A DNA stretch of 64,000 nucleotides from assembly GCA_963924565.1 (NCBI GenBank), contig OZ004612.1:14694001-14758000 (forward strand). The letters are read 5' to 3'. The stretch is from Ascidiella aspersa (taxonomy: Eukaryota). The position numbers and the translations under genes were made by a program. Below the pieces are notes generated by a model, which was not told the origin of the DNA, did no database searches, and saw nothing but the letters and a program-made list of their open reading frames with translations. This document shows, piece by piece, positions 3,291-63,318 of the stretch (positions are counted from its first letter, which is position 1; each line of letters begins with the position of its first letter).

Positions 3291-6200
3291 GTTATATTTG
3301 ATTGCACAACATTAGTTTAAGAACAAAGACTACGTTTGCATATTAAATATAATAAAAATAATTTACTACTCTTAAATTATTAAGTAAATTTAACATCTAT
3401 AGTTTTTGAAATTTAAAACTGTCTTATTAAAAGAGAGGCTCTACTTCTATTTGTAGGTCACTTATCAAAAGTAAAATACTTTTTTTTTACATTTAAAAAA
3501 AAAAGTACTTTACTTATTTTTTTAAATGCTTTGCTTTTCTTTTTAGTTGCAATAATTTTGCCTTTGTATTAAGATCGTGGATATGACTTAACATTTAAGT
3601 CAGCTGATGATCCAAGCCTCGAACTGATCAAATATGGAGTTCATGTCTATGACAACTTGGTAATATTCTCTCCATCTGTTGAAGGTACTTTTATCTTAGT
3701 ACACAAATGCATAATTACTTTATTTATTATATCTTATTTTATACAATTGTAAATTCAAGGATGAAAAAATAAACTAAGGTGCCTGTTTCTTAAAGTGCTG
3801 ACCGGTGGCTGCCCAAGTCTTCTACATATTTCTTGTATACATCTGACATAGCAGGCCATAAATACACCTGACCTTACTGAACTTTTTAAACTCTTGAAAG
3901 GGCCACTTCACTGTGTTAATATTGTTAGGTATAGTAGCGGTTAACTCCCAGTGCACACAACATCATAAACAGTGAATCGTGCAGCTAGAGTAGAATAAAA
4001 AGCTATGTAATTGCCAACTCTTGTCATTGGTTGCACCTCCGTGGACCCCGGTCATGTGCATTAGGTCATCATACTAGACAGTGTATAAATAGTAAATGAA
4101 GCTAATTCTAAAATTTTATATACAAGTGTATTTTATATATCTAAATTAGGCATAAATATTTTTCAGATTTCGGAGGCAGTGTCAAAGTGTCCACCATTAC
4201 TGAATTCATTGATGGTGGTGGCAATCTTCTTGTTGCTGCTGATTCAAGCATTGGGGATCCCATCAGAGAACTTGGCTCAGAATGTGGAATTGAGTTTGAC
4301 GAGGTGCGTTTTTTGGCAACATGTTTAGATAGTTGTAATCTCAAAACAGTAGTTGTCCTCTTCAATATGAAGTTGTTCTAACCAGATGCAACGAGCAATG
4401 GTGTTATTGTTTCCTGACTCGCTACCCTCTTAGCCTGTGTAAGTTGGTTGGTAGAGCGATTGTCACATTATGACTGGAGGTAACGACTAACGAGTTTGAA
4501 CCTCACCGCAGGCTAATCGTTTTTCTAGTCTGCCTTTCTTGTAATTTTACTATTAATCAAATGATTTGGTTAGTCTGCCTAAGCTTCCTGAAAACAGTAG
4601 TTTAATACGATTGGTAATGTACTTTATCGGCCTTTACCATTTGTGAATTGTGACCAAAATTTTGCATATACTGCTTACTTTTTTTTGGTTAATATTTATC
4701 ATAAACTTAATGGCATGCAATATCTTGGATTTTTGAATTGACATACCCAGAACATAAATATGTCCCTCGTTAGTTTTATCAACGGCTATATAAAAACAGA
4801 GAAAAGGTAACACCAATCTGTTAATCTTTAGCATGAAACATTGCTGTTTTCAAACCATTGTTTTATCAAATCATGTGCAGTGTAATGTAAAAAAAATAAA
4901 GTAAAATTCAATGTGTGTCACTCGAATAACGCTGTTTTCCACTCTGTAGGAAAAGACTGCTGTAATTGACCACCACAACTTTGACGTTAGCGATCGTGGC
5001 TCCCACACAAAACTTGTTATTGAACCGGCAAACCTTCTGAAATCCGACAACATTGTTGGTCAGCCGAAATCACCAGTCCTTTTCAAGGGTGTAGGGTTAG
5101 TTCATAAATGATATCTTTTTCGCTTCTCCTTAGTGTAACAATATTGAAAAAGGGGGCTTTTGTAATTATATTTGTCATTGAACGTTTCGGCAATCCATGT
5201 AAGTAGCCTTTTTTGGGGTAAATGATACCAAACTATGTCTTATATTTGTACTTTGGACACCAATTGGATATTCAACTGATTTTTTAGCTTGACTACAGCG
5301 TTTAATTATGTTTAATTGGGAGGTTGGTTTGCAATAGAAAAATCCGGCAATGTCTGCCAAAAATTACAAATGTTAAAATAATAAAAGGTCGAATCCTTTG
5401 TGCAGAATGGTCCTTGAGCAAGAAAATCCTCTTGTACTCCCCTTAATGAAAGGCTCACCAACTTGCTACTCTTATTTTCCTGATGACAAAGTTGAACAAT
5501 ATCCACTTGGTGTTGGTAGCAGTACAGTGCTTGTTGCAGGACTGCAGGTGAGAATACAACAATAGCTTTGTGTTACTTCTTAATTTACAGATATAGACTT
5601 GGTAATTCGGGACAAAATGGCAAGGGGGCAGAATTTAGTATGCTCTCTGACATTAAACTTTTTCACAAATTTGCAAAATCAACAGCAACAATAATTATTA
5701 TCAATTGTAATCAATAAAACATGTAGAATAAGATTAAACGGAAAGTAAATCACTGCTGTCTGGGATGCAATAGTTGGTTGTCAGGGGTTTTCCAATCATA
5801 TTAACGTTTCAGTTTTACTCTTTAACTAATTGAACAGTATTGTTGATTTAAATCTGGTGAACACGGTGGTACATTTGCCAGTTTGTTTTAATTTTCGCTT
5901 GATGATAAAATAGATACTCCCCTAATCATCAATTTTTTGTGTTAAAATGAAGTTGCCTGCATTACCAAGGTCTGGCTGTATATCTGTATATTGCTTAAAG
6001 TTGTTACCCAATTCCCTCTGATGTGGCAAGTTTTCTTAAAAATAGTATATTTTCTTATAATACTGTTTAATCTGTAGTTGTTTTGTAGGCACGGAACAAT
6101 GCTCGGATTATTTTCAGTGGCTCAGTACAACTTTTTAGTGACGAATACCTTACCTCTGGAGTAAAGAAAAGCGGTGCTGGATCAAAGGCGTAAGAGCTTA

Positions 6201-7792
6201 AGTTCGACATATTAAACATTGAAACATGTTTTTTGCATTTTCTAAAATTACTAACTGTTCATTGAAGGAGTAAACATTGTATTGACTAGTGCAATTTCTT
6301 CACACCTTTTTTACATTAAAACAGGTTCCCCAAATCTGGCAACCAGGAATTTGTCACAGCTATTACAAAGTGGGCTTTCCAAGAGGTCGGTGTACTTAGG
6401 GTGGGCAAGGTAGTCCATCATAAAGTGGGAGAGACTTCACCACCAGAGGCATATACCATCACTGATAAAGTGGTGAGTGTACTATTTTGCTGAAATAAAA
6501 TAAATATGGTATTTTTTAATGAGTATTTCCTTTGCATGTTACTTGCCCCATGGCTAATTTACCCTAGTCTGTGTTTTAAGTTTTGTTTATTTTTACTCGC
6601 AGTATAAATGAAACACTCTTGTTATAGACACAAAAATACTTTAAATTTATTCATTTTCGTGTAATGCTCATTCAATGTATTCAAACCCTATTTTTTGTCA
6701 AGCTGTGACTGCTAATCAGGAAACGTTGCCAAGCACTTTCGCATGCACAAAATTTATTTTCATGCTAGACTGGGCCATCAGTTGTTGGTTTTGTGCAATT
6801 TTGATCTAAGAGCTGTTCATTGCATTGCAGCACTATAGCGCCGTTATCGAAGAGCGACAGGAAAACGGAAAGTGGGCTCCGTACAAGGGGAAAGACGTCC
6901 AAATGGAATTTGTCAGAATCGACCCATTTGTTCGCACCCCGCTCAAGCTTAGCACCAAAACTGGCGCGTTCTACGTTGATTTCACTCTTCCTGATGTCTA
7001 CGGCGTTTTCCAGTTTAAGATTGACTACACTCGCCTCGGATACACCTTTCTCAAGAGCGCCACTCAGGTGAGGCTGCTCGACGTGTAAAATGACCACGAG
7101 ATGGCGCGGCTACGTTGGTGTTTTAACTGTTATATGAGTGGCTGTTTTTGTCAGTTGTCCAAAATTTAAGCAAGAAATAAATTATTTTGTAAAATTGCTA
7201 ATCGTAGTTGTAGAACACATTGACTCCTCTTGGCAGGTTAACATATCCTTTGTTAATTTTTAAGTAATTCTACCCCGTTATGATCTGAGTAACACAAAAT
7301 TCAGATGCAACCACGCCTACAATCATCATAATGACGATACCTACTGCTGCTGCAAGATTTGCTGTTAGTTTGGGGATGCCACCAATACCTAAATTGACGC
7401 CTTTAACTGTCTAACTACGATTTTAACTACTCAACATTACTTTTACTAGACAACCGTTCTATTTAGCCTAGTCTGCAAACTTCATACCTTATGAGTTACA
7501 ATTGATTTGAGAATTTTGTAAAAAAACAATACCAAATGGCTGCAACTTTGAAATTGGAATACATGGGGCATATACCGCAAATGCCCTTTACTATAAAATT
7601 GAGTAAATATTAACCTCGAATTATTTGTGTCGCCAGGTATCGGTGCGTCCCTTGCAGCACACCCAGTACGAGCGCTTTATCACGTCGGCCTACCCCTACT
7701 ACGCCAGCGCGTTCAGCATGATGTTCGGCGTCTTTGTCTTCTCCATTTTCTTCCTCTATCACAAAAGCGGCGGAAAGGCGAAGGCGGAGTAA
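3155..7792 (+). CDS. DDOST: Oligosaccharyltransferase 48 kDa subunit (OST48/WBP1), complete spliced CDS: join(3155-3290,3574-3684,4167-4303,4950-5095,5406-5547,6089-6189,6325-6472,6831-7067,7637-7792), 437 aa
   Basis: Nine exons separated by GT-AG introns total 1314 nt with consistent phases. Signal peptide [18 protein letters not shown]; family motifs [61 protein letters not shown]; C-terminal TM helix and KxKxx ER-retrieval tail (KAKAE-stop). Confidence 0.97.
3574..3684 (+). CDS. DDOST: DDOST coding exon 2
   Basis: (D)[36 protein letters not shown]; aag acceptor, gtactt donor. Confidence 0.95.
4167..4303 (+). CDS. DDOST: DDOST coding exon 3
   Basis: (D)[45 protein letters not shown]. Confidence 0.96.
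4431..4515 (+). pseudogene. tRNA-derived relic (tRNA-Met-like pseudogene or SINE head) in DDOST intron 3
   Basis: Terminal stem TAGCCTGTG...CGCAGGCTA, D-loop/A-box-like GGTTGGTAGAGC, B-box-like GAGTTTGAACCTCAC, CAT in the anticodon-loop position; an insertion and mismatches break the cloverleaf. Confidence 0.55.
4950..5095 (+). CDS. DDOST: DDOST coding exon 4
   Basis: [49 protein letters not shown]. Confidence 0.95.
5406..5547 (+). CDS. DDOST: DDOST coding exon 5
   Basis: [47 protein letters not shown]; donor gtgaga. Confidence 0.95.
6089..6189 (+). CDS. DDOST: DDOST coding exon 6
   Basis: [33 protein letters not shown]; donor gtaaga. Confidence 0.95.
6325..6472 (+). CDS. DDOST: DDOST coding exon 7
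   Basis: [49 protein letters not shown]; donor gtgagt. Confidence 0.95.
6831..7067 (+). CDS. DDOST: DDOST coding exon 8
   Basis: HYSAVIEE...[11 protein letters not shown]...[27 protein letters not shown]. Confidence 0.96.
7637..7792 (+). CDS. DDOST: DDOST last coding exon (TM helix and ER-retrieval tail)
   Basis: [54 protein letters not shown]. Confidence 0.96.
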
Positions 7793-22914: not shown

Positions 22915-25900
22915 GTTGGTGAACGTTTTTTAGTGAATTATCGCAGTATAACTGCAACTATCGGTTTTCTGAAAGCGAGCACACCACCTTGTCACGTGAG
23001 GCAGTTATTAACTGTGATTTGCAGGAATCCGTGTCGCAACAACGGAGTGTGCTACAGACAGGGCCAGCAGACCGCTTGCGACTGTTCGGGGACATCTTTC
23101 TCCGGCCAATACTGCGACCAACGTGAGTGGACTATTGTGTGTGGCCGATACTGCCGGCTTGCTAGTTGATGTATATGCGCTTTGGACGTAGAAAAATTCT
23201 CGCTTTGACTGATTTGCAATTTGCGATTTAAATGCATGGCGGCCGGGGTGTATGGTGTGCACTCCGCAGACCGAGAATGTCCTGCGTTATTAGATTACTG
23301 CTGGTTATGTTATCATTCTTATTTTTGAATGAAACCTGAATTGTAATTGCTTGTTACAACCATTATGCAGATAGTTTTTGGTTGACGGAAAATTTTCAAC
23401 TAACCAGCCATTTTTAAAACATTTATTTAATCTGTATTTTATATGCAATGAGGCATACGCCACCGTATGCATGTAGCAGTAACCAGTAGTTCGTCAGTAA
23501 TAGCTTTGTTATTAACTACATTAAATGTCATTGTAAAATAGGTAGCCTAACCCATGTAACGTACAAAGTCATCACTTTTCATGTAGGCTGTATATGTCCA
23601 ATTTTAGCACTACCAATATGCGTATTTTCAAGTAGAAGATATAGGATTCAACAGCAGTAAAATCACGACTGAGCAAATTGCAACAGTAGTTCATCATTAA
23701 AACTTAACCGATGAAAACTGATTTTGTTAATTTATATCTTATAAAACATAACTGACATAATCAATTAACTCGGTTGTTTACGCGTTAGCGTACCAACTTT
23801 TCGATGCAATGATGAATGATGCCCCAGGTGAGAATAAATGTCCACATTGTGTACTAATCCCTTCAAAACGCTGACTCGTGGATTAATTATTATTTGGTTC
23901 CCGCAGGAACCTAACCACTTACTATAACTTAAAAATTACACTCTGGATACTGGTGATGCAGCATCCAGATTTGTGTACGCAAAAACAAACAAATACCCTT
24001 TTTCCATGATGCGTTTTTCCACAAGTCAGCGTATATATAATCCCTGTTTCGCTTATCACCTCATTTTACCATTCGTGATGTGGACCGTTCTTCCGTCATT
24101 CGCCCATATTGAATACAAAATATATACTTTTTTATGTGTATTTGTACAGTCCCACAAAAATGCCGATTGTCAAAAAATTGGTACGCCATTTAATCTTTTG
24201 AATACACTAACAGCGGTATTTTCCACCGATTTTAACCAACGTAGGTATAACTACAAAACTATTGCTAGCTTAAAAACTGGCCTTTAGTCAAAAGTAAGAA
24301 TATTTTGACAGAAACGAATGTATTTCTTTTTTCTGATGGATATGTGTTTGTACATTATACTGCAAGTAGGAAGGGGTCCGATAATATCGGATCGGAGTAC
24401 ATCCTTAATGGCAAGTGGTAGTATTGGTACTCGTCCAATAATGGAACGATATCGGTGCTGATCCGATACCATATTAACATAAGTGGTTCAGTCATAATTT
24501 GCTAATCCGACGCAGCAATTTCTACCAGAGGTTAACTAATAAAAAAAGCAAGTTATCAACTGAAACGCTAAAATGAATTTAGGCTTCATACGCGAAATAC
24601 ACAACTTTTACGTTTCAGTTTTATCTATTTTTCTCTTTGGGCATAGTAATGAGTTAATGGCATAGGTTTGGATCGGTTGGGATTACGATATTTTTGTCTC
24701 AAATATCGGGTATCTATGTATGAAAATAAGATGTCAATATCGGACAATGCTAATTTCAAGCATCAGTCTCCTAAAAGTCGTTCTGTATTTTCAGACGATA
24801 TATTGCAGTGTTTTTGCCTCTGTATCAAGGGAACGTCTACCACACTGTTTCTCTTTCCGCCGGGTTAAACAACAGATAAAGTAGATTTCGTTAAAAGGTT
24901 TGCCTCCCGGTTTAGATTGTGAAGCAGCACACGTACACCAGAGACTAGTACTCAGTGTGGCCGACAAGGTCAAGAGTTTGTTACAAGCCGATTGCTCCGC
25001 GATCGGTGATACTGATTTTTTGGTCAAATTCAATTTAATTCAATTACATGTATTTGTTTATATCGTAACAATCGAATTGTTAAAAAAAATCGTAACATGA
25101 CGATTTATTTAGATACTGTTCAGCATTTGCTTCAACATATTATCATCACTCCACAAATTTTAATAAAGTTTATAATAAGGTTGCGTAATACATTTTTTCC
25201 GTACAAAAATTTCATTTTTGATGTAGTCTCTAGCTTTTTTACATTTTGACAAATGAATGAACTTTGACTTAAGTCATTGACGCGAAATACGTGCCTTCAA
25301 GTGTTTTTAACATTTTTTGGTTAAATGAAGTACTCGCTGCTTGCTACAAAACATATCACTCATTATCTGACGAGTTCACCCGGTTTTAATAATTTAACAT
25401 TTTTGTTTAAATGTAAATTACTTGACTTCAACTAGACTTGTTAATTGTCAAAATGGTTTAACTTAAAATTAAGTTATTTTGCTAATTATCCGACTGGGAC
25501 TTGAGTAATATATAAAAGGACATGATAAGTACACGGCAAACAAACTATAATAGAAAAACATATGTTTCGTATTTATTTAACTCAAATGTATGTTAATTGT
25601 AGTGCTTTTTGCTTAGTCACACTTCTAGTAATTTTATTTTTCTGTTCGTCATGTCTGATTTGTCGTATTTATTTTGACATTTCTAAACCCGATGCTTTGC
25701 GCATTACAATACGCCAAATCGATATCAAATGACGTCATAATTACTTACCACGGTGTAATACTGTTGAACATACCCTTATATTATCTTCGTAATAATTAAC
25801 TGCTAACTTAATACCACTAATCACATGTTTATTGTTGTGTGTACATAATGCAACTTAAAAAAAAATATTTAAAGCCCAATGAGAAGTAATAAGCAACGCT

Positions 25901-28900: not shown

Positions 28901-31900
28901 GCCTACACACCAAAGAATCTAGCGTGTGATTGTCAGACGGTCACTGTTTTGAAAAGCAACATTAAGTTTGCGCGCGCGCATTTCGACTTTAAAAACTTAA
29001 AAAGCATCGTACAAAAAGCATTCACTCCACAATCGATTTTCATTTGCTTGGCGCTCTTGCGCTTCCCCACTCCTGACCGTCCTATTCCAGCCTGCTCCTT
29101 CTACTCTCACTCTTCTGCTCCCACTCTTTGCTCCAACTCCTCATCGGGAGAAGCGACAATTGCTCGTCACCGTCTGACGCCGCGACGGAGGCACGGGCGC
29201 GTCAGGCCGACGAATATATTTGGCGGGTGTCGACTCGCGAAGGACCGGCGAAAGTTCGCCGCAAACACAACGCCATGAATTATTAAAGCCACCCTACCCC
29301 TCCCCCGGCTATCTCCCCCATTCCACATCCCGACCTCGCTGCTTTGCGGCAGACCTCCGGCGGTACGCAACCGACCATAGTCACGCCTGGACAGAAACAA
29401 CCGGCTGGATGAGCTGTGCAAGCTGGATTTTCTAAGACAAGTTAGCGGACATTGAATGAAATCTTGATTTATTCCAACCGAAAGCCTCGTTTGACCGCTA
29501 TTTGCGTTCTGACTCAAGACTGTTTGTTTCAACAATGCGAAGTCCATTATTTTAAACCTGTTGTTGCCATACATTAACGTTTGCGTTATAGCCTGCGAAT
29601 GCGCAAAAATCCAAGCAAGCTAACCTTTCCATCCGCAAGACTTCTTATGGTCTAGAATCATTTAACTGCGGTTTTCTAACAAGCTTCGTGCGACCACCAG
29701 GAGTGATTTCCAACTGTTCAAAAGTCCGATTTGTGGGTTGTGCGTTTATTCTCTTTCACGTTCGACCTGCGTGATTCTTTTTTAAAAGACTAAGACTGAT
29801 TGTTGTTCTTGGCTACCGAGGTTCTTATCCATTCAAATGGGAGTTGTGATGTAGGGCTTATCGATAACCGATTACAGAAAAGTTTCGCAATGTTCTTACA
29901 TTGGCCTTTCGCTTCTAGTAATTTTGACGCATTAACTTAACGATGTTACAAATTTCATAACAATTCATTAAAGCATTAAGGGTCGGTCTGTAAAAGGATC
30001 TTTGCTTCATAAAGAGCACTCTTTGCTTCATAAAGACATTTATAGATTTACAAATACGGTGCTTTTTATGTTGATTTTTATCACATGATTAGTATACTGA
30101 ATAACCTTAGTTGATTAAAATTTGTTATACATATATTTACTTCATCTATTCAAAATTAATCACAAACCGCGTTTTATGGTTATTTCAATTGATACATTAC
30201 AACCAGCACGAAATTTCGCTGAAAACGTGATTATTGCCGGCAGTATTTATTGAAAAGGGTATTTAAATAATTCATTATCTGGCCGGCCCAAAAGGATGAG
30301 CTGGTGCTCGCGACTGAACCTTTCGGACAAGCCTAGCAATACGCAGGTTTTCCTCAATACAAAAAGTACAAAGCGGGGTTGGGAAGTCCTTGTGGTTTCT
30401 TAGATGAGTCATGGCCGTGGCACAGTTTGAACTAATGGGATAGTTGTAAAAACGACAAACATGGTTGGAAACGCATAACTATATATTTAAATGCCAACTA
30501 TCCCTTTTATAACAATACATACGTTTGTTGATTTTGTTGGTTTTCTCACCATCTCGTTTAAAACCCTAACATTCTATTTGAATAAGATACTGATAATGCT
30601 TTTAGTAGCGAAATATATTGATCATATTACATCCAAACAAACTGATTTTCGGTTTACCAAGTTTTGTTCTTTCGGATTCAGGCAGATTCTGTTAATCGTA
30701 AGAAAAATTCTTATTTAAAACCCATTTAATAAACTTTAAAATGGGCATGTTATAAAAATGACAGCTTTCAACGAAGCTGTGGCCACGTTTACCTGAAAGA
30801 ACTGCCACAAGTATAACGTGCCAAGCATTTCCACTTGGTAATTTTTAGTATTAATAAGTGCCATGCGTAAAAAAACATATGAACATATGATATTACCAAA
30901 AAGGCTTGAACGTTCGTTTGAACCGAGTACGAGGTTTACTGAAGTGAATAATGTAGACATGTTGCGTAGTTTGGGATATTTCCAACCATTAGTAAACCGT
31001 AATCTCAACAAACGTGACAAAAATGGGAATCTTACTTTATTACCTTTATCAGTTACAAATGTCTTCCATTTAAGTTAAAAATCCGAATTGAAGTTACTAA
31101 CTAAAAGTTTACGATCAATAAAAAATCCTTAAATATTATTCCAGGCAAATCGGCGGACTTTGTAAGTCTCTCGCTTATGGAAGGCGGCGTCCAGCTTGTG
31201 GTCAACTTGGGGTCCGGGGCTTACAAGATCGACGTCCAGCCAAAAACCGGGAGACTTTTCAACGACGACAAGTGGCACCGTGTACAGATCAACAGGACCC
31301 TGCGAAAGGTAAATATCTCGAGTTTAACGTTTTTTAAACTTTCCAATCGTTAATTATTCTAATAAAATATAAGAAAATAATGTCTTATCGACTCCCAGCC
31401 GGTTTTATTAATCAGCCTCAAAGAAAAACCAAGTGTTCTGCTGTAGAATCGGTCCCCTCATCCAATAACGCACAAAAACACCTATACAATAATCACCTTG
31501 CATTTTTTTAATTTACGTCGTTTAGCACAACAGCTTAAGTTACCTATACTACACTCTAAATTTACCATTGTGACAAGTTGACATGCCAAGAGTTGTGTGA
31601 AACACTTGAAGATAAATACTCCAACCTTCACTAGTTAAAAATTTTTTTTTTTACTGTTAAAAAACATACGTAAAATAGGTTCGTCGAACAACAGTGCAAA
31701 TGTTCAATAAACCTATTTTACGTGTGTTTGTTTGTTGTCTTGCAGTTTAATTCGCCCAGCCTAAAAAAGCAGAGAACATCGTGACCCTACAACCAATTTA
31801 AAGTGATATATAGACATGCATAATAATAAATGACGTTGTCACTGCCTTGATTGCGTGAATCCCTACATTTTTCCCAGAACGAAACACATATGTATTTTAA

Positions 31901-43900: not shown

Positions 43901-46900
43901 TTATAATTTTATAAATATAAGATAACGTGCATAAACAAATTGATAAATGTCCTTCGCCATTTTTTCGATTAAATTGATTTTTGTTCTAAAGCGAATTTGA
44001 TCTTCCGGCCACATTTACTCAAAATATGAATATGATGTTCGTGTTGACATGTGTACAGATTGTCAAGCGACCTGATGTGTAAACGAGCAGCTCAAACATT
44101 TATTGTTAAAAAATAACAGTGCAATAGATAGAAAACAAGGATGTCGATCAACTTTATTTGTTTAACATGCTTTCAACATCACTAGGTTTCATGGAAACCT
44201 TTTGCATATTGACGTGTAGGGTTGTACGTGTTTATCCTTCCTTTTTGCTAAGATTAGGGCGCACTCGATTTTAATTGACGTCATTACTGTGATAAGCTAG
44301 CAAAATTATTAAGTGTAAAAGAGCGTATTTAACGTTTTTCGAATATTAAGCCAAAATTTACTTTAGTTTAGTAAAATACTTTTTAGTAATACTTTCTACT
44401 TGTTAATACATAATTGCCCTTTCTCATTGCCTTCTCAGGGTAGAAAACGGTTCACTGGATGGCAGAATACACCTGTTAATTGGTTTTGGTCCCACAATAT
44501 TGATCGTGTCTTGACTGACATCGCATGTATCAGCTCCGATCCAATATTCAAAATGGTTAAATACTGAAACTCGATAGACACATTCCCCAATATAGACACA
44601 TTCCCCAACGCTGCCTACAGCAGAGCTATTAAATAGCCTTGTGCTTCAATGACATATGTTACATTCGCACGTATAGTATTTTAAAGTGGTACAGCATTAC
44701 CTAGAACTAAAAAATGTCTAAATTTTATGTGCACTTTTGCTAATAGTAGTTGAGCATTTCTAGTTTTTTGGGTAAATTGGCAATAAAATAAGTTAATAGA
44801 GCAGAACAGGGGACATTGCCTCGTGGAAATTGAATTTAGTTTTACCGACTTATGTCGTCCAGGAAGTTATTATTTGACCGTAAAGCCGTTCCTAATCGTT
44901 CCAGTCTACTTTCACCACTACGTATACACGCCTAATTCCATATTCACTGCTTTTTTAAACGCATATATTTATGTGCAGTCCCTTGCGCGGTCCTCCGGCA
45001 CCAACATGGGTCCGTCGCCGCTGGGAAGCGGTACCGACATCACTGCTTTCTGTGGCGGTCTGGAGGGCAGCCAGTGCAGATCGGGCCCCTGCCAAAACGG
45101 CGCCAGGTGCAAGGAGGGCATGAACCGCTTCATCTGTGACTGCGCCGACACGTCCTTCAAAGGAAAGACATGCGGCGAAGCGGTGATGTCAGCCAGCTTC
45201 GACGGCACCCAGCATATGACTTTCCCGATGGCCAAGAGCGTGCAAACCGTGGGCGAGGACATCTCCCTTCGTTTCAGGACGCCCCTCAGTTCGGGTAAGT
45301 TTTGTGGCAGCTCGTTAGTTTTGGCAGTCGCCAAAACCGCCATCCAAGTTCACTAGAAAGGGTTTCGGTGCTAGTTATATTGTTTGCTTGCATATTAACA
45401 AAACGAATTCAGATGAAACACATTAATTCTACTCCAATTTAAAGAAATATTTAGCCAAACCAAAAAATAATTAGTGTTATTTTTTGCGGTCAGTGGAACT
45501 AATATGCTATGGCTTAGCATATTTTAGTATTTTTTTGTGATTTAAAAAGAGAAAATAAATATATATACATGTACATTATAGCTGATCTATTCAAGGGTCC
45601 AACCTTTTCACTACAAAATTATAACATTTTGTTCATGCCTAATAATTTATTGTATAACACACGCAAGTATGTTTTCGAAATGTTTAGATGAGTTCAGATA
45701 TGCATGCTTCTTATTTTAGGTATTTAAAAAATATTTTGAGTTCGTTTAACCTATTCAGAGACACCCGTAACGACTTGTCCATCTATTTTCTCATTTGTAT
45801 CGAAAATCTGCCATTCCTAATTGAAGTACACCAACATTTGATGTATACTGAGTTCTGTGTGTATTGTAGGGACATTGTTTGGTACGGTTTCAAGTCGCAG
45901 CAGGGATTTGGTGCGACTTGAAATGGTGGAAGGCGGAAGGGTCAAACTGACGATCGATTTGGGTACGTATATTGAGCACTTATAGTTTTCTACTTGTGTT
46001 TTACGTCGTGGTGATTGATTTTTTTATTTTTTGTTTATCATATTTATAGAAAAGTGTCATTTTGTTGGTTTTCTGTTAAGTTGTGTGGCAAAAGGGGAAA
46101 AATATTAAAAATGTAGGCCTTATATTATATAAAAAAAATCAAGATTAGATTATTTTTATTTTTCCCTTTTGCTACGAACCCAATGCTATATAACGTTTTC
46201 GCCATTTTATATTTTTATTGTACAGACTGCTCCCAACCCAACTGCACTGCACCTCGTAAGTCTCATCTTTGCACTTCATTATTCCGCACAATAAGTTGCA
46301 TGTTTATCATAATTGATGTCGGCTTGTTGCGCCTAAATTTACAATTTTTTGTTTTATGTCGTTCTTACATACAGGAAAGATGCAGACTGTGAAAAAGTTT
46401 TTCGTTTTGTAGGAAAAGCGGTGCGCAAACGTATATCGATTCACGGATTATTTTACTTACAAAAACTGGAATCCGTAAACCGTTTTTGTTTGTTTGTTGC
46501 ACTTTTCTAAACTCTTTCACAAAAACATGTTTTTATCTAGTAACATTCGAATAGCTCAAGAAAAAAACATGGGAACTTGTTTTCTTGTTCTAATCAATTC
46601 ATTTTTAGACTCAAAACGAATAAAAAGAAATGTCCAAAACTTTTCACCAGGAATACATCCTATTATTTTGGTTTAAAAAGGAGGTAACCTGTGATAGTCA
46701 GCAAATTTTTGCCGTCACCCATTAACGAAAAGGAGGAATACTAAGTTATACTTTAATTGCTAACGACTATTAGGTCATCAACTGTCGCGATTGCACAATT
46801 TTAAACTTCAATTTGGCTAAACCGCTCGACCGTTTAACTTTATAGTCCAGGTGTCGCGTAAGGTTCAATAAACGCAGCTGGCGAAACTTACCTTTAATTA

Positions 46901-55900: not shown

Positions 55901-58900
55901 ATTTGTAACAGTATGTATAGTCCACGCTAGTTCAATGTTCTTACAAAAAGGTGTTGTTTAATATTCCCGAATACTTTTCTTTGATTAATTTATTTCATTT
56001 ATAATGTGACCATGCCTTATGGTTTACTCCTGTGAATAGCGGATTTCGGTTTATTCGCTTAGCATGATTGTTTTGCAATGTGACAGGTCGATGTCGCTGT
56101 TTATGAGCATCAAGACTATTGTTATGGACGGGTTGATTCTCTACAACGGTGGCCCTAGCGGCGATTTTATTGCCGTCGAACTTTCGGGAGGCCAAGTCTT
56201 TTACATCTACAACTTAGGGAACGGTCCTCAAGTAAGCAAAATATTTATACATATGCACATGTGACGTATCAGTCCCGCGGTCATTTTTAAAATAGATGTT
56301 TAGAAGACAAACTGAATAGTTCATACTGAACTTTGTTTGGTTTGCACGGTCTATCATTGTCATTTACCACTGTGCGTTTTACTGCTTGCACAGCCTCAAT
56401 TTTTGGTACATATTCGGCACATTACTGTCAATCTAACACAGTGATTTACAAACTTTTTCTTGTCGCGTCGACCTATTAGCTTTTTACAGTTGCTGAGCAC
56501 TGCTACTGTTTTTGTTCGGCTAAAGTTAAGTTCAGTTAATTCAATTTATTTGATCCATAAACTAGTGTGACGATCCGAACACTGCTCGTTTACCACCAGG
56601 AAAGCCCACATGTACCACTAGAGGTGCGTGAATCACAGCTTGAGAATCCTTGCTCTAACATAATAACAACGATTTTAAATCGTATACTATATACGGCAGC
56701 ACAACAAGCACAATTTTTTGGACAGCTTCGCTTATACCGGTGACACTTCGTTCAAAAAGCAAGCGCTGCCAAAATAAAGGCAATCATTTGTAGTTTTACT
56801 AAAAAACTTGCAATTAGGATGCTTCTTTTTACCACAAATGTGCATGTTAGGTTTTGACTGTGCCGGAGAGTGCTGCCGTGAACGACAACAAGTGGCACGA
56901 TATTCGCGTGACCAGATCGAGCCGGAACGTTCATACGCTTACTGTTGATGGAAAGGCGATCAAACAGACAGGACTCGAACAAAGAAGACACTTGGACCTA
57001 AATGGTAGCGTTTAATTGAAACGACGTGATGCCATCACAATTGCTAACAACCGCGTCATTTCGTCTGATTAGAGAATTATAAGTAGATTTAGCCCAAGAC
57101 TGACTTGGGCCAAGTAAAAACATTTACAGCCAAATACTACATGTCGATTCGTTTTGAATATGAATTTATAGTAAAACGCATATAAACTGTGAGCATTGCT
57201 ATTTAAAAATATAAATCATCAGCTGTCAATAAGTTGCGCTTCTGCCTAGTTTGACCAACTAAAAAACATTTTTGGACACATGTTGTTATGAATTAGTGTT
57301 AGGTAGTTTTGCTTATGTACTACTACTTTGTAGGTTACTTCTACGTTGGCGGTGTCAGTCAAATCATGTACTTAAACGACCTACCGGACATTGTTGCGTC
57401 ACGAACTGGATTCCAAGGTTGCCTGGGGTCACTGGAGGTCAATGGCAATCTGCAGGACTTGCGAAACCAGCAGGGAAAGATCACAATCGGAAAAGTGGCA
57501 GCCGGTTGCCTAGGTAAGAAAAAATAAATGCCGTTTAAGATAATTAATTTATTGTGTAAACGAAAAGCGTTAAATGCCGAAGAACGTACAGAGTATTATT
57601 GTATAAGTTTACGGGGTTTGGTGCATTTTGCATTATATTTGGTGTAACAATTTTTTAATGGCTTATTCCCTGTAGGCCTACCGATTGTTTTTTTTTAATT
57701 AAAAATGTCGAAGCTTCTTCTTTAAAATCAGTAAAAAAATTGTACAAGCATCAGAGACATAGTGGAGTTTGCTTCATGTCAGCTGTTTTTTTCTTGAGTA
57801 AAATACTTTTCGTTTAAGTTGTTTGCAATACCAATAGCAAAGTAGGTTATCAATCTAAAAGTTCAAATATTTTACAACGTAAAACCAATTCACCTTATAA
57901 ATATTTGCTTAGCCAATAATTTGGAAGAAACGGCTCACGTTTTAATATATTTTTAGTCTGCCTATAGCAAAAATTTACTTGGTCGGTGTTCCTTTCACAC
58001 CCTTCCATTATAGCCCATTATAGCAAAGTGTTTTTAATAAGCTTGTACAATCTTGCGGCCGCTTGATAGACAGAAAATGTTTTTTGGAACTATATCCCGC
58101 AGCATATTAGTTATATGTAAGTCTTTAACACTGGATCATGAATGCGGTAAAATATGTACAGATGTGTCCGCTTAACATTTATGGTTTTATGCCATTTCTA
58201 CGTTATATGCTTGAAAGCTAAAACAGTTTAGGTAGCAAGGAATCTCCCGCAGACAATAAAATGTAAAAGAAAGATTCTTGTTTTCGTATCAGATAATCTT
58301 AAACTGTTTATAAAAACAGATAAAACATAAAATCATTCCTTAAATTTTAACAGAAATATATATTTCGCCTATAAGGCATTATCAGTTTCTTAATTCGAAT
58401 TAATCTTCATTCGAATTGATTAATATGCTTGAATGCATTTTTTTTTCTTTTTGTTATAATTTTTAAACGTTACCCTTCACCAATAGCCCCTTCTCCACCT
58501 TGCACACCCACTACGTGCAGCAACGGCGGTGTGTGTCTGCAACAGTGGGACGGATTCAAGTGCGATTGCAGTCTCACCGCATACGTAGGAAAGCTCTGCC
58601 AACAACGTGAGTTTGGACACCGTTTAACTGACATGCAAATAATTAATTATTTGAATTGTCCGTGTTTGATTCCATTTTAACCGTATTGTGAGCTCGGATT
58701 AATGTTTGGAACTATATGGTTATAGGTAAAATATTATTCCTTTTCAGAAACTGATAATAATGTTAATCTGTTTAAAATGTAAAGAGGGTGCATTTTATTT
58801 ACCAAATCAACACCCTTGCTAATATTTCCAACAGTTTTTCTTGTCAACGTTTAAGCAATCGCCTATCACGGAAATCACAGCTGCTAAATTTGTAACTTGA

Positions 58901-61900
58901 AATCGATATTTAATTAAAACACCATTCAGATTGGTTGATGATAAATAAGTAACGCAAGTTTGTGTTAAATTTTTATTGATTTTGCTCATTAGACGAATAA
59001 TTTGGTGAAACGTGTGATGTACTCGATGTATGACTTTGCCATGACATACCATTATATAAATGTATGATGGTTTTTCAAAATACGAATGCGCATGAATTAT
59101 AATACGAAACCTTTATCAATATATTACTTTGATGTTTAATTTTTTTTTTATCTTAAAAAAATCTGCCTGCACGTTGTATTATATAAAAGGTGTACATCTC
59201 ATATTCTTTAAATTATAACGAGGTATTAGAGCAAGCCAATTTTAGACGTTAGTTCATCCAAGAACAAAACTCTCAGAAGGAAAATAACTTAAACGAATAA
59301 ATTATATTTTATTGTTTCTTTCCATTTAGACGTCAGTAAACTGCCCGGTAAGCAAGAGTGCTGTTTTGCTCCCAAAGTAACCATAATGTAGTTTCCAAGC
59401 TGAGTGCTGTGAGATACTGCTCTGAGCGCAGCGCTCGGACGACGGACTAAAAGCATGCAAAATTCACTACAACGTTAATTTTAAACAAGCATATTTTTAT
59501 ATATTATAGTTACATAAAGCCTTCTCGTTGACTTTCGCACAACTCGAGATGCGAAGCACGTAGTTTTATATATTTTGTGCTATGCACCGCGAATGTTTCA
59601 CCACGCTCGCAGTCTCTAACAAATGAAAAAGTTTTTTTTTTCGTTTAGCATTTGCTTTACAGCGAATGCGAAGTTATCCAAAAATTGTTTTCTGAACGTT
59701 AGTTTTATTCACTGCTTTCAATTCTTCCCAGGCAACATTGAATATATGTTGTTTGGCGTACTATTTTGATTTGCACAATGTGTACTGTAGTGTTTGTTTT
59801 ATTTCTGAAAGGTATTACTGAAAAAGGGATAAAATGTAGAGAAATGCAAAAAATGTTAATTGTATTACGATTGTATCATCAAAATTCCTCAGCCAAACCA
59901 CACAAACAGATGTTAACAAAACATTTTTTTTAATTAAAAAACAGGTTTACACCCTGTTGTTTTAGTGAGCTGCAAAAGTTTCTGTATAATACATTTATCG
60001 ATAGGTTTACGCAAACTGAATGCATGGTGTATTATGTCCGCATGATTTGCATGATGACCTATATGAGGATTTTACATTTTTTATTTTCAGAAATATTATT
60101 AAAAATCGTGTGTGGAAAATTTGGAAAACTAAATGGCCTAGCTAGTATGACTGTTCAATAAGCTATAACTTGCTGCCACTATCCAAACCACTGTTAACGC
60201 ATGCTACCATAGTTGTTTACTAAGTTTAAAATTGACTCCTTTTATCTTACTTAGATAACAAAAATAAAATTCTAGTGTTTTCATTCAAATGTAATTCGTG
60301 AGCCGAATGTTGACTACAATTTTGGTTCGGGTTGACAAGGCTGTAAAACCTTAGAAAAATCATTTAAAATATCCATCCTTATATGTCACCCACTGCACAC
60401 TAATGCCGTTCTGACCGAGTCCCTTACCACTGTTGAATTTACAGGAGGTAATAGCTACAAGTTTGGGCCTGGCGCCGGCCTTATGCTTTACAAATGGCCC
60501 AATACGTACCCGAGCACGCGCTCGGACCGCTTGGCCCTCGGCTTTTCGACGTCACTACGAGATTGCGTCATCCTGAAAGTGACCGGGTACACCGAGGCCC
60601 CCGCACAGGACTTTCTGCTCTTGGCCATCGTGAGTCCGCTTAAAAGTCAAGCGCGCGATTCATAGCTCTCAGCTGTTAGTAGGTTGACGTGAGCAAATAC
60701 CCTCACTTTACACACCGTGGTAACCATTCGAAACGAACTGCCCAGGCGTGCATTTCATGCGTTTTTAAAAACTGCTTCGAAATTTGAGCAGGCGTTTTTG
60801 TTCCGCCAACTAAACAGCATCCCCAGAACTACGAATCGCGCCCGACGAATTTCAACCTTTACTTACCACATCCTATTTATATTTTATTTTCATAATTTGC
60901 TCGCAAACCGCGGCCGCCAACCGTCAGAACTCTCCTCAAAGACTACCTACCGCTTCGACCGCGGAGTTATGGTGTTTCGATTTCCATCGCCGTTGCGCAG
61001 CGTTCGCTCAGACGTGCTGACTCTTGGTTTTGCCACCAGGGCTCGGAACTCTCTGCTGGTTGAGGTCGAGTCGGCTATGCGCCGGCCAAAGGACTTCCTT
61101 CGACTTGCCATAGTGAGAGGCGCGCCCTGGCGTGTTGGCTTGCTTCTGCTGCGGCGTGGCTGTGTGTGTTCTGGCTGTCGTCACCAGTTGTGCAAGCGTC
61201 ACAATGCCGAGTGCATGGGTTTTACTTCTCTAACTCGAACCGTTATGGATTACATCTTGTCGTTTCCCCCGTGTGTGTCGGTACTTGCCTATGGTTTTCA
61301 TTTTGAACGTGTTGCCTTAAAGTTCGACTGAAATGTTAACATCCTTCATTTGAATATCCATAACTCAAGCAAGTTTTTGTACATCTGGAGATAACCTCAG
61401 TTTGTGCCTGCATTTTTTCCTTTTGTTAACAAAAGAATGTCGATTGGTTTTTTGATGGCCATGTAAATCATTGTACGTTCGTTCAAACTAACATGACCAG
61501 CTCTTCTGGCAGTGTGGGATTTTCGACCTGTCTTTTTGTCGAAGCTTGATTGTTGAAAGAGTTTTGTTTTTCGGTCCCTAATCGTTTTAAAACGTTCTAC
61601 GGCGGCCTCGGTTTGCGATTATATCGTAAAATCATTGTAATGCCTAAGCATTGAATATTTATCATAGTTTTTTTACAATATTTTACTTTAATTTTAATAT
61701 CATGTAAAACATGCTTAGAATTCGGAGATATTTTCTAAAATGTCTGCAAAATATAATAAAACCCATTTTTGAGGCCTTTTTCGCGTCAAGTTTTTAACAT
61801 ATTGTTATAAGTTGCTTGAAACCGATAAAAATAAGCGGATGCATAAAACAGTTTTATTTTTAACACTCGATTGATTAGTTGGATTCGTAGAAACACTGCA

Positions 61901-63318
61901 GCAACTGACGTGAGACAATTGGCCTTTCACTTGCTAATGGGTTTTAATGGCTTCGGGATGTTAGTGGAATCGCTTTGTCTTAAACGTTTGGCAGAAACCC
62001 GAAGTCAATATGCTCCCTTCTACTAGCTGTGAACCTTGTTGCACTGACAAACCTTTTTTTGTTCCTTTCACAAGGAAAACGGCAAGCTCATTCTTCGTTT
62101 TAACGTTGGTGGAGCGAGCGACGTGGTGCTGAGAGAAGGAATGTCCGTTTCGGACGGAAGCTACCACACTGTGCAGGTGCGCCGCCAGTGGCTGAACGCC
62201 ACCATGCGTGTCGACAATTGGCCGGTCAGAAGCGTCGCCCCGCCCGGTAAGTTGGTCACGTGATGTTGATGATACAAATAGTTACGTTTGTGTAACGTCG
62301 AGTATTTAAATAAACAGAAAAAGTAAAATCGACGGTTTGATTTTTTTGAAGATTTGAAATATACGTGTTTTTCTATTGTTGTAAAACTAATTTACTAGAA
62401 AACAAATGGTTGTTGACGATTTTTAAAATCCAAGTTTTTGGAAATATTATAATTAACAACGTTAGTGTGCTACAATTTGGTAAAAAGTTATTATTGGTTT
62501 CTATTTTCACCTTTGATTATACTGCCTAAAAAGAATATGAATAAAAACCTTGCATTCTGACCGATAGTTGTACAATTTGCATGTGCATTTTACTTAACGT
62601 TCATCGTTTTCAATAGCAGCAGTAACATAACCATCATTTTAGCTGTTTATCCCGTTAACCTTAACCAACAACCATCACCGCTCTGTAAAACGATGTGTGG
62701 CCTGTTTCTCTCGATGCACGTGAATACTAACGATTTCATCCTAACCGAATGGCATAGCAGGAACGCAGTAACATAAACGTCGTAACAACCGGTCTTGGTG
62801 TGCTGGCGGGAAGGTGGCCAAAATAATTCCACAATAGAAAAGACTCACCGGACAAATTTGGTTAAATTGTTTACCGTTTAAAACACGAAATGTAGAGCGG
62901 CACATGATCATTTTTTTTAATCATATCATGATCCTACGTTTGCAATACAAAAGCCCCGCCAATTATGTTAACGCTTTATTAACAACTTAAAACACCCGAA
63001 ATCCATTGTCAACCACAAGTCTCAGGTCCCCTGATAAACGCGAACAGTCATTAATAATGTTAAGTCTAATTAGTGAACAATTATATTTTCCAAATTAAAA
63101 AAATGACTCAGACGACATAAACTCTTGTGTAAATTCAATTTCATCTTGCTCCTATGGAGCTTGTCTCCAAAACCCAATAACAAATTTGCTCTCCCCACGG
63201 TTCCTTCTTTTATATACGTTTCTTGTTGTAGGGGATGCACGTTCCCGCTTTGCTCGCGTGATACCCTCGATAGCTTCCCCTGCCCGTCCCACCATTGATA
63301 AGTGGTTGCAACGCAAAG
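22133..63318 (+). CDS. NRXN: alpha-Neurexin, 5' part (signal peptide, LNS1-EGF1-LNS2-LNS3-EGF2-LNS4-LNS5-EGF3-LNS6 partial); continues beyond the window
   Basis: 20 phase-consistent backbone exons (3739 nt to 62246, using LNS6 exon A) with neurexin-specific motifs [89 protein letters not shown]. Confidence 0.96.
23025..23122 (+). CDS. NRXN: Neurexin EGF1 exon
   Basis: [32 protein letters not shown]; donor gtgagt. Confidence 0.95.
23789..23827 (+). CDS. NRXN: Neurexin SS1-like 39-nt cassette exon (predicted)
   Basis: cgcgttag|...|gtgaga, phase 1-1, no stop, [13 protein letters not shown]; resembles vertebrate SS1 GLAHLMMGDQ. Confidence 0.65.
27480..27620 (+). CDS. NRXN: Neurexin LNS2 exon a
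   Basis: [46 protein letters not shown]. Confidence 0.95.
30735..30837 (+). pseudogene. Degenerate partial duplicate of LNS2 exon a with its upstream intron flank (pseudo-exon or poison exon; exon part 30765-30837)
   Basis: 51/67 nt identical to 27480-27546 without indels; acceptor tgacag retained; GGA changed to in-frame TGA at 30794-30796. Confidence 0.85.
31145..31308 (+). CDS. NRXN: Neurexin LNS2 exon b
   Basis: [55 protein letters not shown]. Confidence 0.96.
32674..32700 (+). CDS. NRXN: Neurexin SS2 27-nt microexon (possible longer form to 32754)
   Basis: Phase 0-0 TRDDPTPAM|gtaaag at the SS2 position; UGC-rich upstream intron; second in-frame GT at 32755. Confidence 0.75.
32869..32960. 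repeat. ~45-bp tandem duplication downstream of the SS2 microexon
   Basis: ATGTCTTT(G)TTTCTTAATGTAATGTGCCCTGGTACRCAAATAACCC present twice. Confidence 0.9.
35243..35410 (+). CDS. NRXN: Neurexin LNS2 exon c
   Basis: [56 protein letters not shown]. Confidence 0.96.
36316..36537 (+). CDS. NRXN: Neurexin LNS2/LNS3 junction exon
   Basis: [18 protein letters not shown]...VQFACAK...PVSFITPES...[11 protein letters not shown]. Confidence 0.95.
36972..37079 (+). CDS. NRXN: Neurexin LNS3 exon
   Basis: [36 protein letters not shown]. Confidence 0.94.
37761..37883 (+). CDS. NRXN: Neurexin LNS3 exon
   Basis: [41 protein letters not shown]. Confidence 0.93.
38143..38307 (+). CDS. NRXN: Neurexin LNS3 exon
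   Basis: [55 protein letters not shown]. Confidence 0.94.
44979..45294 (+). CDS. NRXN: Neurexin EGF2 and start of LNS4
   Basis: [33 protein letters not shown]...SFDGTQHM...EDISLRFRT. Confidence 0.96.
45870..45962 (+). CDS. NRXN: Neurexin LNS4 exon preceding SS3
   Basis: [31 protein letters not shown]. Confidence 0.94.
46226..46255 (+). CDS. NRXN: Neurexin SS3 30-nt microexon
   Basis: tacag|...|gtaagt, phase 1-1, [10 protein letters not shown] versus vertebrate SS3 DCIRINCNSS. Confidence 0.9.
48033..48152 (+). CDS. NRXN: Neurexin LNS4 exon following SS3
   Basis: [39 protein letters not shown]. Confidence 0.95.
50538..52013. mobile_element. Non-autonomous hAT element (~1.48 kb) with a second hAT-like left end nested at 50862
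   Basis: TIRs CAGTGGTTCCCAACC / GCTTGGGAACTACTG; perfect 8-bp TSD CACTAGAT at 50530-50537 and 52014-52021; GGACCCC subterminal repeats; no transposase ORF. Confidence 0.9.
53223..53272. repeat. 24-bp tandem duplication
   Basis: TCGTAATATTAGCTTTTACTTAAG present twice. Confidence 0.85.
54876..55032 (+). CDS. NRXN: Neurexin LNS4 exon
   Basis: [52 protein letters not shown]; phase 1-2. Confidence 0.92.
55655..55780 (+). CDS. NRXN: Neurexin LNS4/LNS5 junction exon
   Basis: [41 protein letters not shown]; phase 2-2. Confidence 0.92.
56087..56231 (+). CDS. NRXN: Neurexin LNS5 exon
   Basis: [48 protein letters not shown]. Confidence 0.95.
56439..56652. mobile_element. Degenerate hAT MITE in a neurexin intron
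   Basis: CAGTGATTTACAAACT ... GCTTGAGAATCCTTG; TSD ATCTAACA/CTCTAACA (7/8). Confidence 0.65.
56851..57004 (+). CDS. NRXN: Neurexin LNS5 exon
   Basis: [51 protein letters not shown]. Confidence 0.95.
57334..57513 (+). CDS. NRXN: Neurexin LNS5 exon
   Basis: [42 protein letters not shown]...VAAGCL. Confidence 0.95.
58487..58606 (+). CDS. NRXN: Neurexin EGF3 exon
   Basis: [39 protein letters not shown]. Confidence 0.96.
59330..59347 (+). CDS. NRXN: Predicted 18-nt microexon between EGF3 and LNS6
   Basis: attgtttctttccatttag|ACGTCAGTAAACTGCCCG|gtaagc; phase 1-1; encodes HVSKLP. Confidence 0.65.
60445..60629 (+). CDS. NRXN: Neurexin LNS6 first exon, variant A (canonical-like; mutually exclusive with B)
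   Basis: 185 nt, phase 1-0; [35 protein letters not shown]...QDFLLLAI|gtgagt. Confidence 0.95.
60646..60866 (+). promoter_or_regulatory. Predicted intronic pre-mRNA stem with adjacent putative branch point between LNS6 exons A and B
   Basis: 60653-60669 pairs with 60825-60841 (15/17 Watson-Crick); 60672-60680 pairs with 60809-60818; TACTTAC at 60860-60866. Confidence 0.65.
60928..61112 (+). CDS. NRXN: Neurexin LNS6 first exon, variant B (divergent tandem duplicate; mutually exclusive with A)
   Basis: 185 nt, phase 1-0, open frame; [36 protein letters not shown]...KDFLRLAI|gtgaga. Confidence 0.88.
62075..62246 (+). CDS. NRXN: Neurexin LNS6 second exon (precedes SS4)
   Basis: [57 protein letters not shown]. 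Confidence 0.96.
63232..63318 (+). CDS. NRXN: Neurexin SS4 cassette exon (87 nt)
   Basis: Long pyrimidine tract then tag|; phase 1-1; [29 protein letters not shown](G) versus vertebrate SS4 ...RVVDEWLLDKG. Confidence 0.88.

Follow-up and report, generated by a model that had tools for sequence, protein, structure and literature searches.

The 298-nt intron between two alternative exons (A and B) of a neurexin gene of the ascidian Ascidiella aspersa contains a hairpin that is real, stable and single-copy. The best explanation, to which a probability of roughly 45% can be given, is that this hairpin is a passenger palindrome and that the exclusive use of exon A or exon B stems from other sources. 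The palindrome would have arisen locally as an inverted duplication, without upkeep by selection on the sense RNA, and because such an insert folds on itself, the effective length of the intron would be unchanged and the insert would be tolerated. Exclusive use would then be secured by the reading frame, which is shifted by the inclusion of both exons or of neither and which would expose transcripts with both exons (A+B) to nonsense-mediated decay (NMD), and in addition by a weak acceptor of exon B, the pyrimidine tract of which is distal, and by ordinary protein splicing regulators. The hairpin may be a harmless passenger, and a control of A/B splicing by it is neither shown nor refuted.

The alpha-neurexin gene lies on the + strand of the 64-kb window, that is, of the whole stretch of 64,000 nt that was analysed, and a tblastn search with the neurexin product P0001 of Phallusia mammillata placed about 22 exons over positions 22178-63317 (Table 1 lists the features around the A/B pair). 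In protein searches with single exons as queries, the top match to exon A was this same product of a P. mammillata 'neurexin-3-like' mRNA (64% identity over 61 residues). The microexon directly upstream of the pair has its counterpart in the Phallusia protein (HVSTLPE), and in the Phallusia mRNA an A-type exon is joined straight to the counterpart of the exon at 62075. Exon B is a diverged duplicate of exon A: the two are equal in length and phase, the encoded sequences share 38% identity (E 2e-13), and they are the sole such exons in the 308-Mb genome. Searches for homologues of exon B with the surrounding open frame and with exon B alone gave no match within the limited length range that they covered, which does not imply that homologues are absent. 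Pfam searches of the genome (Forkhead, PDEase, A2M bait region, receptor L domain) yielded no clear tandem exon duplicates. An RNA run provided 20 reads, all in the orientation of the + strand gene, with none over 60592-61164 and no junctions.

Table 1. Features of the region around exons A and B (positions in the window)
Feature	Positions	Strand	Basis or remark
18-nt microexon, (H)VSKLP(G)	59331..59348	+	Directly upstream of the A/B pair; ends in phase 1; AG before, GTAAGC after
Exon A, 185 nt, canonical LNS6 start	60445..60629	+	64% identity to P0001 residues 1143-1203; acceptor AG 60443-44; donor GTGAGT 60630-35
A-B intron, 298 nt	60630..60927	+	Read from sequence
Imperfect palindrome of ~201 nt, rod-like hairpin, single-copy	60646..60846	+	Arms align at 49/72 columns
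Outer stem, 5' arm, 15/17 paired	60653..60669	+	Pair probabilities 0.91-1.00
5' arm, inner extension, pairs with 60794-60818	60672..60700	+	Two helices of 11 bp
3' arm, inner extension	60794..60818	+	Pairs with 60672-60700
Outer stem, 3' arm	60825..60841	+	Pair probabilities 0.91-1.00
AG-free zone, 99 nt	60827..60925	+	Sequence scan
TACTTAC, candidate distal branch site, A at 60865, 61 nt upstream of acceptor	60860..60866	+	Predicted unpaired 0.85
Pyrimidine/U-rich tract	60867..60905	+	Read from sequence
UUCAU, alternative branch-like motif, A at 60892, 34 nt from acceptor	60889..60893	+	Read from sequence
Exon B, 185 nt, diverged duplicate of A	60928..61112	+	Acceptor AG 60926-27; donor GTGAGA at 61113
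Predicted stem over the B donor, 61036-61069 with 61100-61130	61036..61130	+	Helices of 9, 5 and 11 bp, probability 0.54-0.72; donor unpaired only 0.31
Next constitutive LNS6 exon	62075..62248	+	79% identity to P0001 residues 1204-1261; acceptor AG 62073-74

The exon length bears on the preferred explanation. As 185 nt is not divisible by three, transcripts that contain both exons, or neither of them, are shifted in frame, and the reading of A into B runs into a stop codon 30 codons into exon B; the frame shift together with this stop makes NMD of A+B transcripts the expected outcome. As far as the exon sequences tell, A and B are already mutually exclusive through the reading frame. This speaks for a passenger hairpin.

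The elements of the intron that had been named in the preliminary description were all recovered from the sequence: the complementarity of 60653-60669 and 60825-60841 at 15 of 17 positions, the inward continuation of the stem by 60672-60680 on 60809-60818 with one bulged base, the outward pairing of GTC (60646-48) with GAC (60844-46), the motif TACTTAC at 60860-60866 with its A at 60865, and the absence of AG throughout 60827-60925. One coordinate was corrected, in that the GT of the A donor occupies 60630-31, hence the last position of exon A is 60629 and the intron comprises 60630-60927. The outer stem is present in the minimum-energy fold, and all 15 pairs had predicted probabilities of 0.91-1.00 in contexts that ranged from 298 nt to 2.2 kb. 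It is extended by two inner helices of 11 bp each (60672-60683 with 60806-60818, mean probability 0.72, and 60688-60700 with 60794-60805, mean 0.57), and the outer stem and the two inner helices together form a rod of about 37 bp. On these predictions, the hairpin should fold in the pre-mRNA and loop out about 190 of the 298 nt of the intron.

Comparison with shuffled sequences bore out the proposed fold for the element and less so for the intron as a whole, with a z score of -3.0 for the 205-nt element on the + strand (minimum free energy, MFE, -58.5 kcal/mol) and of only -1.5 for the entire intron. The - strand of the same element folds far better, with an MFE of -80.3 kcal/mol and a z score of -5.3, a value that was reached by 0 of 200 shuffles. 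This difference arises because A.C mismatches of the sense strand, to which both mismatches of the outer stem belong, are read as G.U pairs on the antisense strand. On the sense strand, the rod contains five A.C mismatches versus three G.U pairs, whereas selection on the sense RNA would predict the reverse. The mismatches and the better antisense fold give no indication that the sense RNA is under selection and favour the passenger explanation, an argument that is tempered by the fact that the asymmetry of five to three is statistically not significant.

The strength of the antisense fold could also mean that the minus strand encodes a hairpin RNA within the neurexin intron, for example, a precursor of small RNAs. 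In addition to its energy, a continuous outer stem, in which G.U pairs replace the sense mismatches, would agree with such a product. Nevertheless, this origin is highly improbable, because a branched rod of 205 nt is unlike the shape of a pre-miRNA, the 20 RNA reads include none at this place and share the orientation of the + strand gene, and the strand asymmetry comes down to five versus three positions. Moreover, the element has no match to an Rfam family, which is also what would be expected of a passenger.

The arms themselves point in the same direction. They are near-perfect over the outer 24 nt alone and decay inward (49 of 72 aligned columns are identical), and by this decay the element looks like a fairly young inverted duplication; neither arm has a second partner that stands out. 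In three further DNA runs of the species, contigs revealed three SNPs in the intron, at 60642, 60756 and 60774, and none of them is located in the arms. Freedom of the arms from polymorphism would count against a passenger, albeit weakly, since with just three intron SNPs about 42% of random outcomes would likewise spare the arms.

Whether a hairpin of this strength demands a function depends on how frequent such hairpins are in the genome. Among dinucleotide shuffles of the intron, 0.33% contained an ungapped inverted repeat with at least 15 of 17 complementary positions, versus 3% of real 298-nt windows of the locus. A background sample of 200 kb, drawn from 20 arbitrary places of the genome, contained 55 inverted repeats of at least 15/17 and 24 separate loci with hairpins of z <= -3, which corresponds to about one per 8 kb, and the 64-kb window contains four; hairpins are common, as the passenger explanation would have it. 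Further copies of 17 of the 24 sampled hairpins were present even within the 264 kb compared, which identifies these 17 as repeat families, and the other seven look unique. The element in the A-B intron is single-copy: in the 308-Mb genome, a 211-nt query matched itself alone at E <= 10, and the arm motif was found at the two arms alone, apart from one chance-level match. A search for related loci among metagenome contigs, aimed at orthologous introns, revealed no relative.

The single-copy state of the element, the arms of which do not belong to any repeat family as terminal repeats, is a point against a passenger, and so is its position. Unique hairpins of comparable strength occur about once per 16-29 kb, and from this density the chance that one of them would lie wholly within the A-B intron is about 0.3-1.2%, before allowing for post-hoc selection. 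Furthermore, all four unique hairpins of the window are located in neurexin introns beside alternative segments. The placement of the hairpin is notable, but it is not overwhelming, as the hairpin was picked after the fact.

The single-copy state of the element and its co-location with this intron, an event of about 1%, also speak for a steric block. The hairpin would hold the donor of exon A at 35-47 nt from a branch point at 60865, so that U1 on A and U2 on B could not assemble together and A-to-B splicing would be precluded. On the modelled structure, such a block appears doubtful, in spite of a stem that keeps a probability of at least 0.9 whatever the context folded and of the z score of -3.0 of the hairpin. 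The linear distance from the donor (60630) to the candidate branch A (60865) is 235 nt, and the claim that folding shortens it was borne out in its structural half: the path is reduced to 47 nt (23 + 24 nt) by the robust stem alone and to 35 nt (16 + 19 nt) if the weak GTC/GAC pairs are counted. With regard to a limit of about 50 nt, however, 47 nt are borderline, all the more if the width of the helix end is added.

A limit near 50 nt has been proposed for vertebrates (PMC7969005), and for OGDH the same article documents a steric threshold at about 50 nt as well as introns of restricted size between exons that are mutually exclusive. In Ascidiella aspersa, the short introns that were measured have lengths of 70, 70, 76, 80 and 85 nt, and in the two 70-nt introns, which are actin introns with the motif TACTAAC, the donor-to-branch distance is 51 nt; these shortest introns make a limit of about 50 nt plausible for this species. 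A literature search gave no usable figure for intron length in Ciona.

The position of the branch point is the second element on which a steric block would depend. TACTTAC matches the TACTAAC of the two actin introns of the same genome at six of seven positions and is followed by the U-rich tract, which makes it a reasonable candidate branch site, and its distance of 61 nt from the AG would fit a distal branch. Branch candidates nearer to the acceptor exist, however, and if the A at 60892 were used instead, the folded path would be about 62 nt. The AG-free zone, which had been read as a sign of a distal branch point, is present with its 99 nt, but the constitutive EGF3 exon (acceptor 58485) is preceded by an equal zone, and among 20 acceptors of the gene the zone has a median of 40.5 nt and reaches at least 70 nt in six. 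Such a zone is ordinary for this gene and, as evidence that the branch is distal, it is weak. A steric block is further opposed by the A.C mismatches and the better antisense fold, which argue against selection on the sense RNA, and by an exclusivity that is already enforced by the reading frame and NMD.

The fit of the palindrome into the intron deserves separate consideration. The stretch from the donor region to the branch motif is occupied almost exactly by the palindrome (60646-60846), and the robust stem leaves 23 nt on the donor side and 24 nt on the branch side, a fit to a good branch motif that counts against a passenger. Without the palindrome, the intron would measure about 97 nt, with about 35 nt between its donor and TACTTAC and 61 nt between the branch and the acceptor, a layout like that of the classical, size-constrained steric-exclusion introns of alpha-tropomyosin and OGDH (PMC7969005). 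One might picture the A-B intron as a classical steric-exclusion core of about 97 nt that has absorbed a 201-nt palindrome and in which the predicted fold still keeps the donor and TACTTAC too close for A-to-B splicing; a history of this kind is conceivable, yet rather unlikely. An insertion that folds on itself is of a kind that a steric-exclusion intron could tolerate, and the good fit agrees with a passenger as well as with a steric block.

The shortened path could also have a productive effect. In yeast introns, splicing is promoted by structures that bring the donor and the branch closer together, and the hairpin might aid A-to-B splicing by setting a workable distance, so that a frame-shifted A+B transcript would be produced and degraded and the output of neurexin would be lowered. 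The 47-nt path is near the 51 nt of the efficiently spliced actin introns, and the A+B product has its premature stop in exon B, both of which would agree with this role. Nevertheless, it is the least probable of the explanations considered here: the RNA run of 20 reads has no supporting reads, and a literature search turned up no precedent in neurexins.

The hairpin might alter the choice of exons in still other ways. Its 3' arm (60825-60846) could occupy the region just upstream of the branch in which U2 is anchored and so tune the use of exon B, or its 5' arm could be a hub that pairs alternatively with a segment downstream of B (61132-61175), looping out B, or upstream of A (59391-59440), looping out A. 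Collinear pairings of the 5' arm at -38 kcal/mol are predicted with both segments, the pairing with 61132-61175 is rich in G.U pairs and for this reason specific to the sense strand, and the donor of exon B is itself part of a predicted stem (Table 1). Competing structures have also been proposed to arise by tandem exon duplication (PMC6071210). However, unrelated GC-rich windows across the 64 kb give similar duplex energies, and consequently duplex folding of 55 x 60 nt windows is not discriminating; in a full partition function with 2.2 kb of context, the local hairpin keeps a probability of about 0.99, which would render the alternative pairings negligible at equilibrium. A role of this kind is unlikely.

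The consequences would differ considerably between these explanations. If the hairpin is a passenger, the case calls for caution, because in a genome with about one strong hairpin per 8 kb, a stem near splice signals, however stable, is, taken alone, weak evidence. If, by contrast, the hairpin enforces the A/B choice, it would show that even introns of restricted size between mutually exclusive exons can grow, as long as the insert folds on itself. Structure-assisted steric exclusion would then be extended from one insect gene to a synaptic adhesion gene of a chordate, and no steric switch assisted by structure would have been described in a chordate before this intron, which would act on the ligand-binding LNS6 domain of neurexin. 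It would also provide a switch that is compact, with about 300 nt, and testable, for an alternative LNS6 face of neurexin.

Several known systems resemble the A-B intron in one or another respect. Known structured RNA families, including miRNA precursors, were considered and rejected, as Rfam gave no match at gathering score in the window and only a chance-level value (E = 0.8) for 60300-61300. With MITEs and other foldback repeats, the element shares its palindromic form, about 200 bp in length, and its near-perfect outer arms, and the genome is full of such elements, to judge from the 17 of 24 sampled hairpins that are multi-copy. Origin from a MITE or foldback transposon was nevertheless rejected, because the element is single-copy, the sequence of its arms is unique, and no flanking target-site duplication is visible. 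The docking/selector systems of Dscam exon 6, 14-3-3 xi and ATE1 (origin model in PMC6071210) likewise involve intronic complementarity in a cluster of tandemly duplicated exons, but here both arms are located in one intron and no second selector stands out. A competing docking/selector arrangement was rejected, because the pairings with 61132-61175 and 59391-59440 do not surpass those with unrelated GC-rich windows and the local hairpin has a probability of about 0.99 in 2.2 kb of context.

Further parallels are provided by systems with steric constraints. Exons 2/3 of alpha-tropomyosin and exons 4a/4b of OGDH (PMC7969005) resemble the pair described here in the adjacency of the alternative exons, the short intron, the candidate distal branch, the long U-rich tract and the long AG-free zone. 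In these two genes, the branch is 25-46 nt from the upstream donor in linear distance (PMC7969005), whereas in Ascidiella aspersa the branch is a candidate motif that is brought close to the donor by the predicted hairpin alone. Measured by the classical definition of steric hindrance (a branch less than about 50 nt, linear, from the donor), the intron with its 235 nt falls outside, and a branch upstream of 60827 would have no AG-free path to the acceptor. For a steric block, the nearest precedent is Dscam exon 17, for which a combination of steric hindrance with RNA secondary structure has been reported (Yue et al. 2013, RNA Biol 10:1822; cited in PMC13762713 and PMC7969005). The Dscam case concerns an insect gene and is reported to be backed by conservation and mutagenesis, whereas the case of Ascidiella aspersa is a thermodynamic prediction for one ascidian genome. 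What the two appear to have in common is the idea of an intronic structure that acts, or in Ascidiella aspersa would act, in concert with the steric constraints that exist between two alternative exons.

The A. aspersa genome is rich in palindromic repeats, as revealed by random 10-kb samples (L014-L033). The 200 kb of samples contained 24 strong hairpin loci, some with z values (folding energy compared with shuffled controls) below -30, and 17 of these 24 have further copies inside just 264 kb of sequence. The unique hairpins of the window (four of four) are all located in neurexin introns adjoining alternative segments. They number four in 42 kb, versus seven in the random 200 kb (Poisson p ~0.06).

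Coordinates, sizes and folding z values of features in the window
Feature	Position	Size	z
Second gene (+ strand)	3573-7085
Single-copy hairpin, intron following EGF1 exon	23858-24042	185 nt	~ -7 (both strands)
Single-copy hairpin, intron 5' of SS2 region	31654-31737	84 nt	~ -7 (both strands)
Single-copy hairpin 5' of SS3 microexon	46077-46183		-3.9 (+), -2.3 (-)
3' arm of the preceding hairpin	46159-46175
SS3 microexon acceptor AG	46224
Stretch of higher difference	58679-60314
Microexon before exons A and B	59331-59348	18 nt
Stretch of low difference	60315-61713	1.4 kb
Palindrome 5' arm, predicted alternative pairing	60646-60700
Partner of the 5' arm, predicted	61132-61175
Predicted exon B donor stem	61036-61130	~25 bp
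Exon B donor GT	61113

Further pairings are predicted around exon B. The exon B donor is predicted to form a stem with the 3' part of the exon (probability 0.54-0.72), leaving the donor unpaired with a probability of just 0.31. In addition, the 5' arm of the palindrome in the A-B intron could also pair collinearly with a GU-rich stretch 20-60 nt 3' of the exon B donor (39 bp with many G.U pairs, -38 kcal/mol), which would loop out exon B; in this analysis the pairing was indistinguishable from chance.

DNA contigs from two runs of the species (X1 and X2) differ from the window by ~1.7% upstream of exon A, and by only three SNPs and one indel in the following stretch, which takes in both exons as well as the first 600 nt of the intron downstream of them. 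This low difference could be due to constraint or to a shared haplotype block. Homology confirmed the microexon preceding the two exons, (H)VSKLP(G): at this junction, the product of the neurexin mRNA from Phallusia mammillata reads HVSTLPE. Upstream of the neurexin gene lies the second gene, the open frames of which, on inspection, resemble the 48-kDa oligosaccharyltransferase subunit (DDOST).

The actin genes (clusters L008 on C4 and L010 on C1) contain introns of 70-85 nt; in two of these introns, a branch box lying 18 nt from the acceptor matches the yeast-like TACTAAC perfectly.

The 3' arm of the SS3 hairpin is the pyrimidine tract immediately 5' of the microexon acceptor, and the predicted structure could mask this acceptor. 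The near-perfect hairpin ~900 nt 5' of the SS2 region is comparable in size to small-RNA precursors, and it had no match in Rfam. The hairpin in the intron following the EGF1 exon resides at the place of SS1 in vertebrate neurexins.
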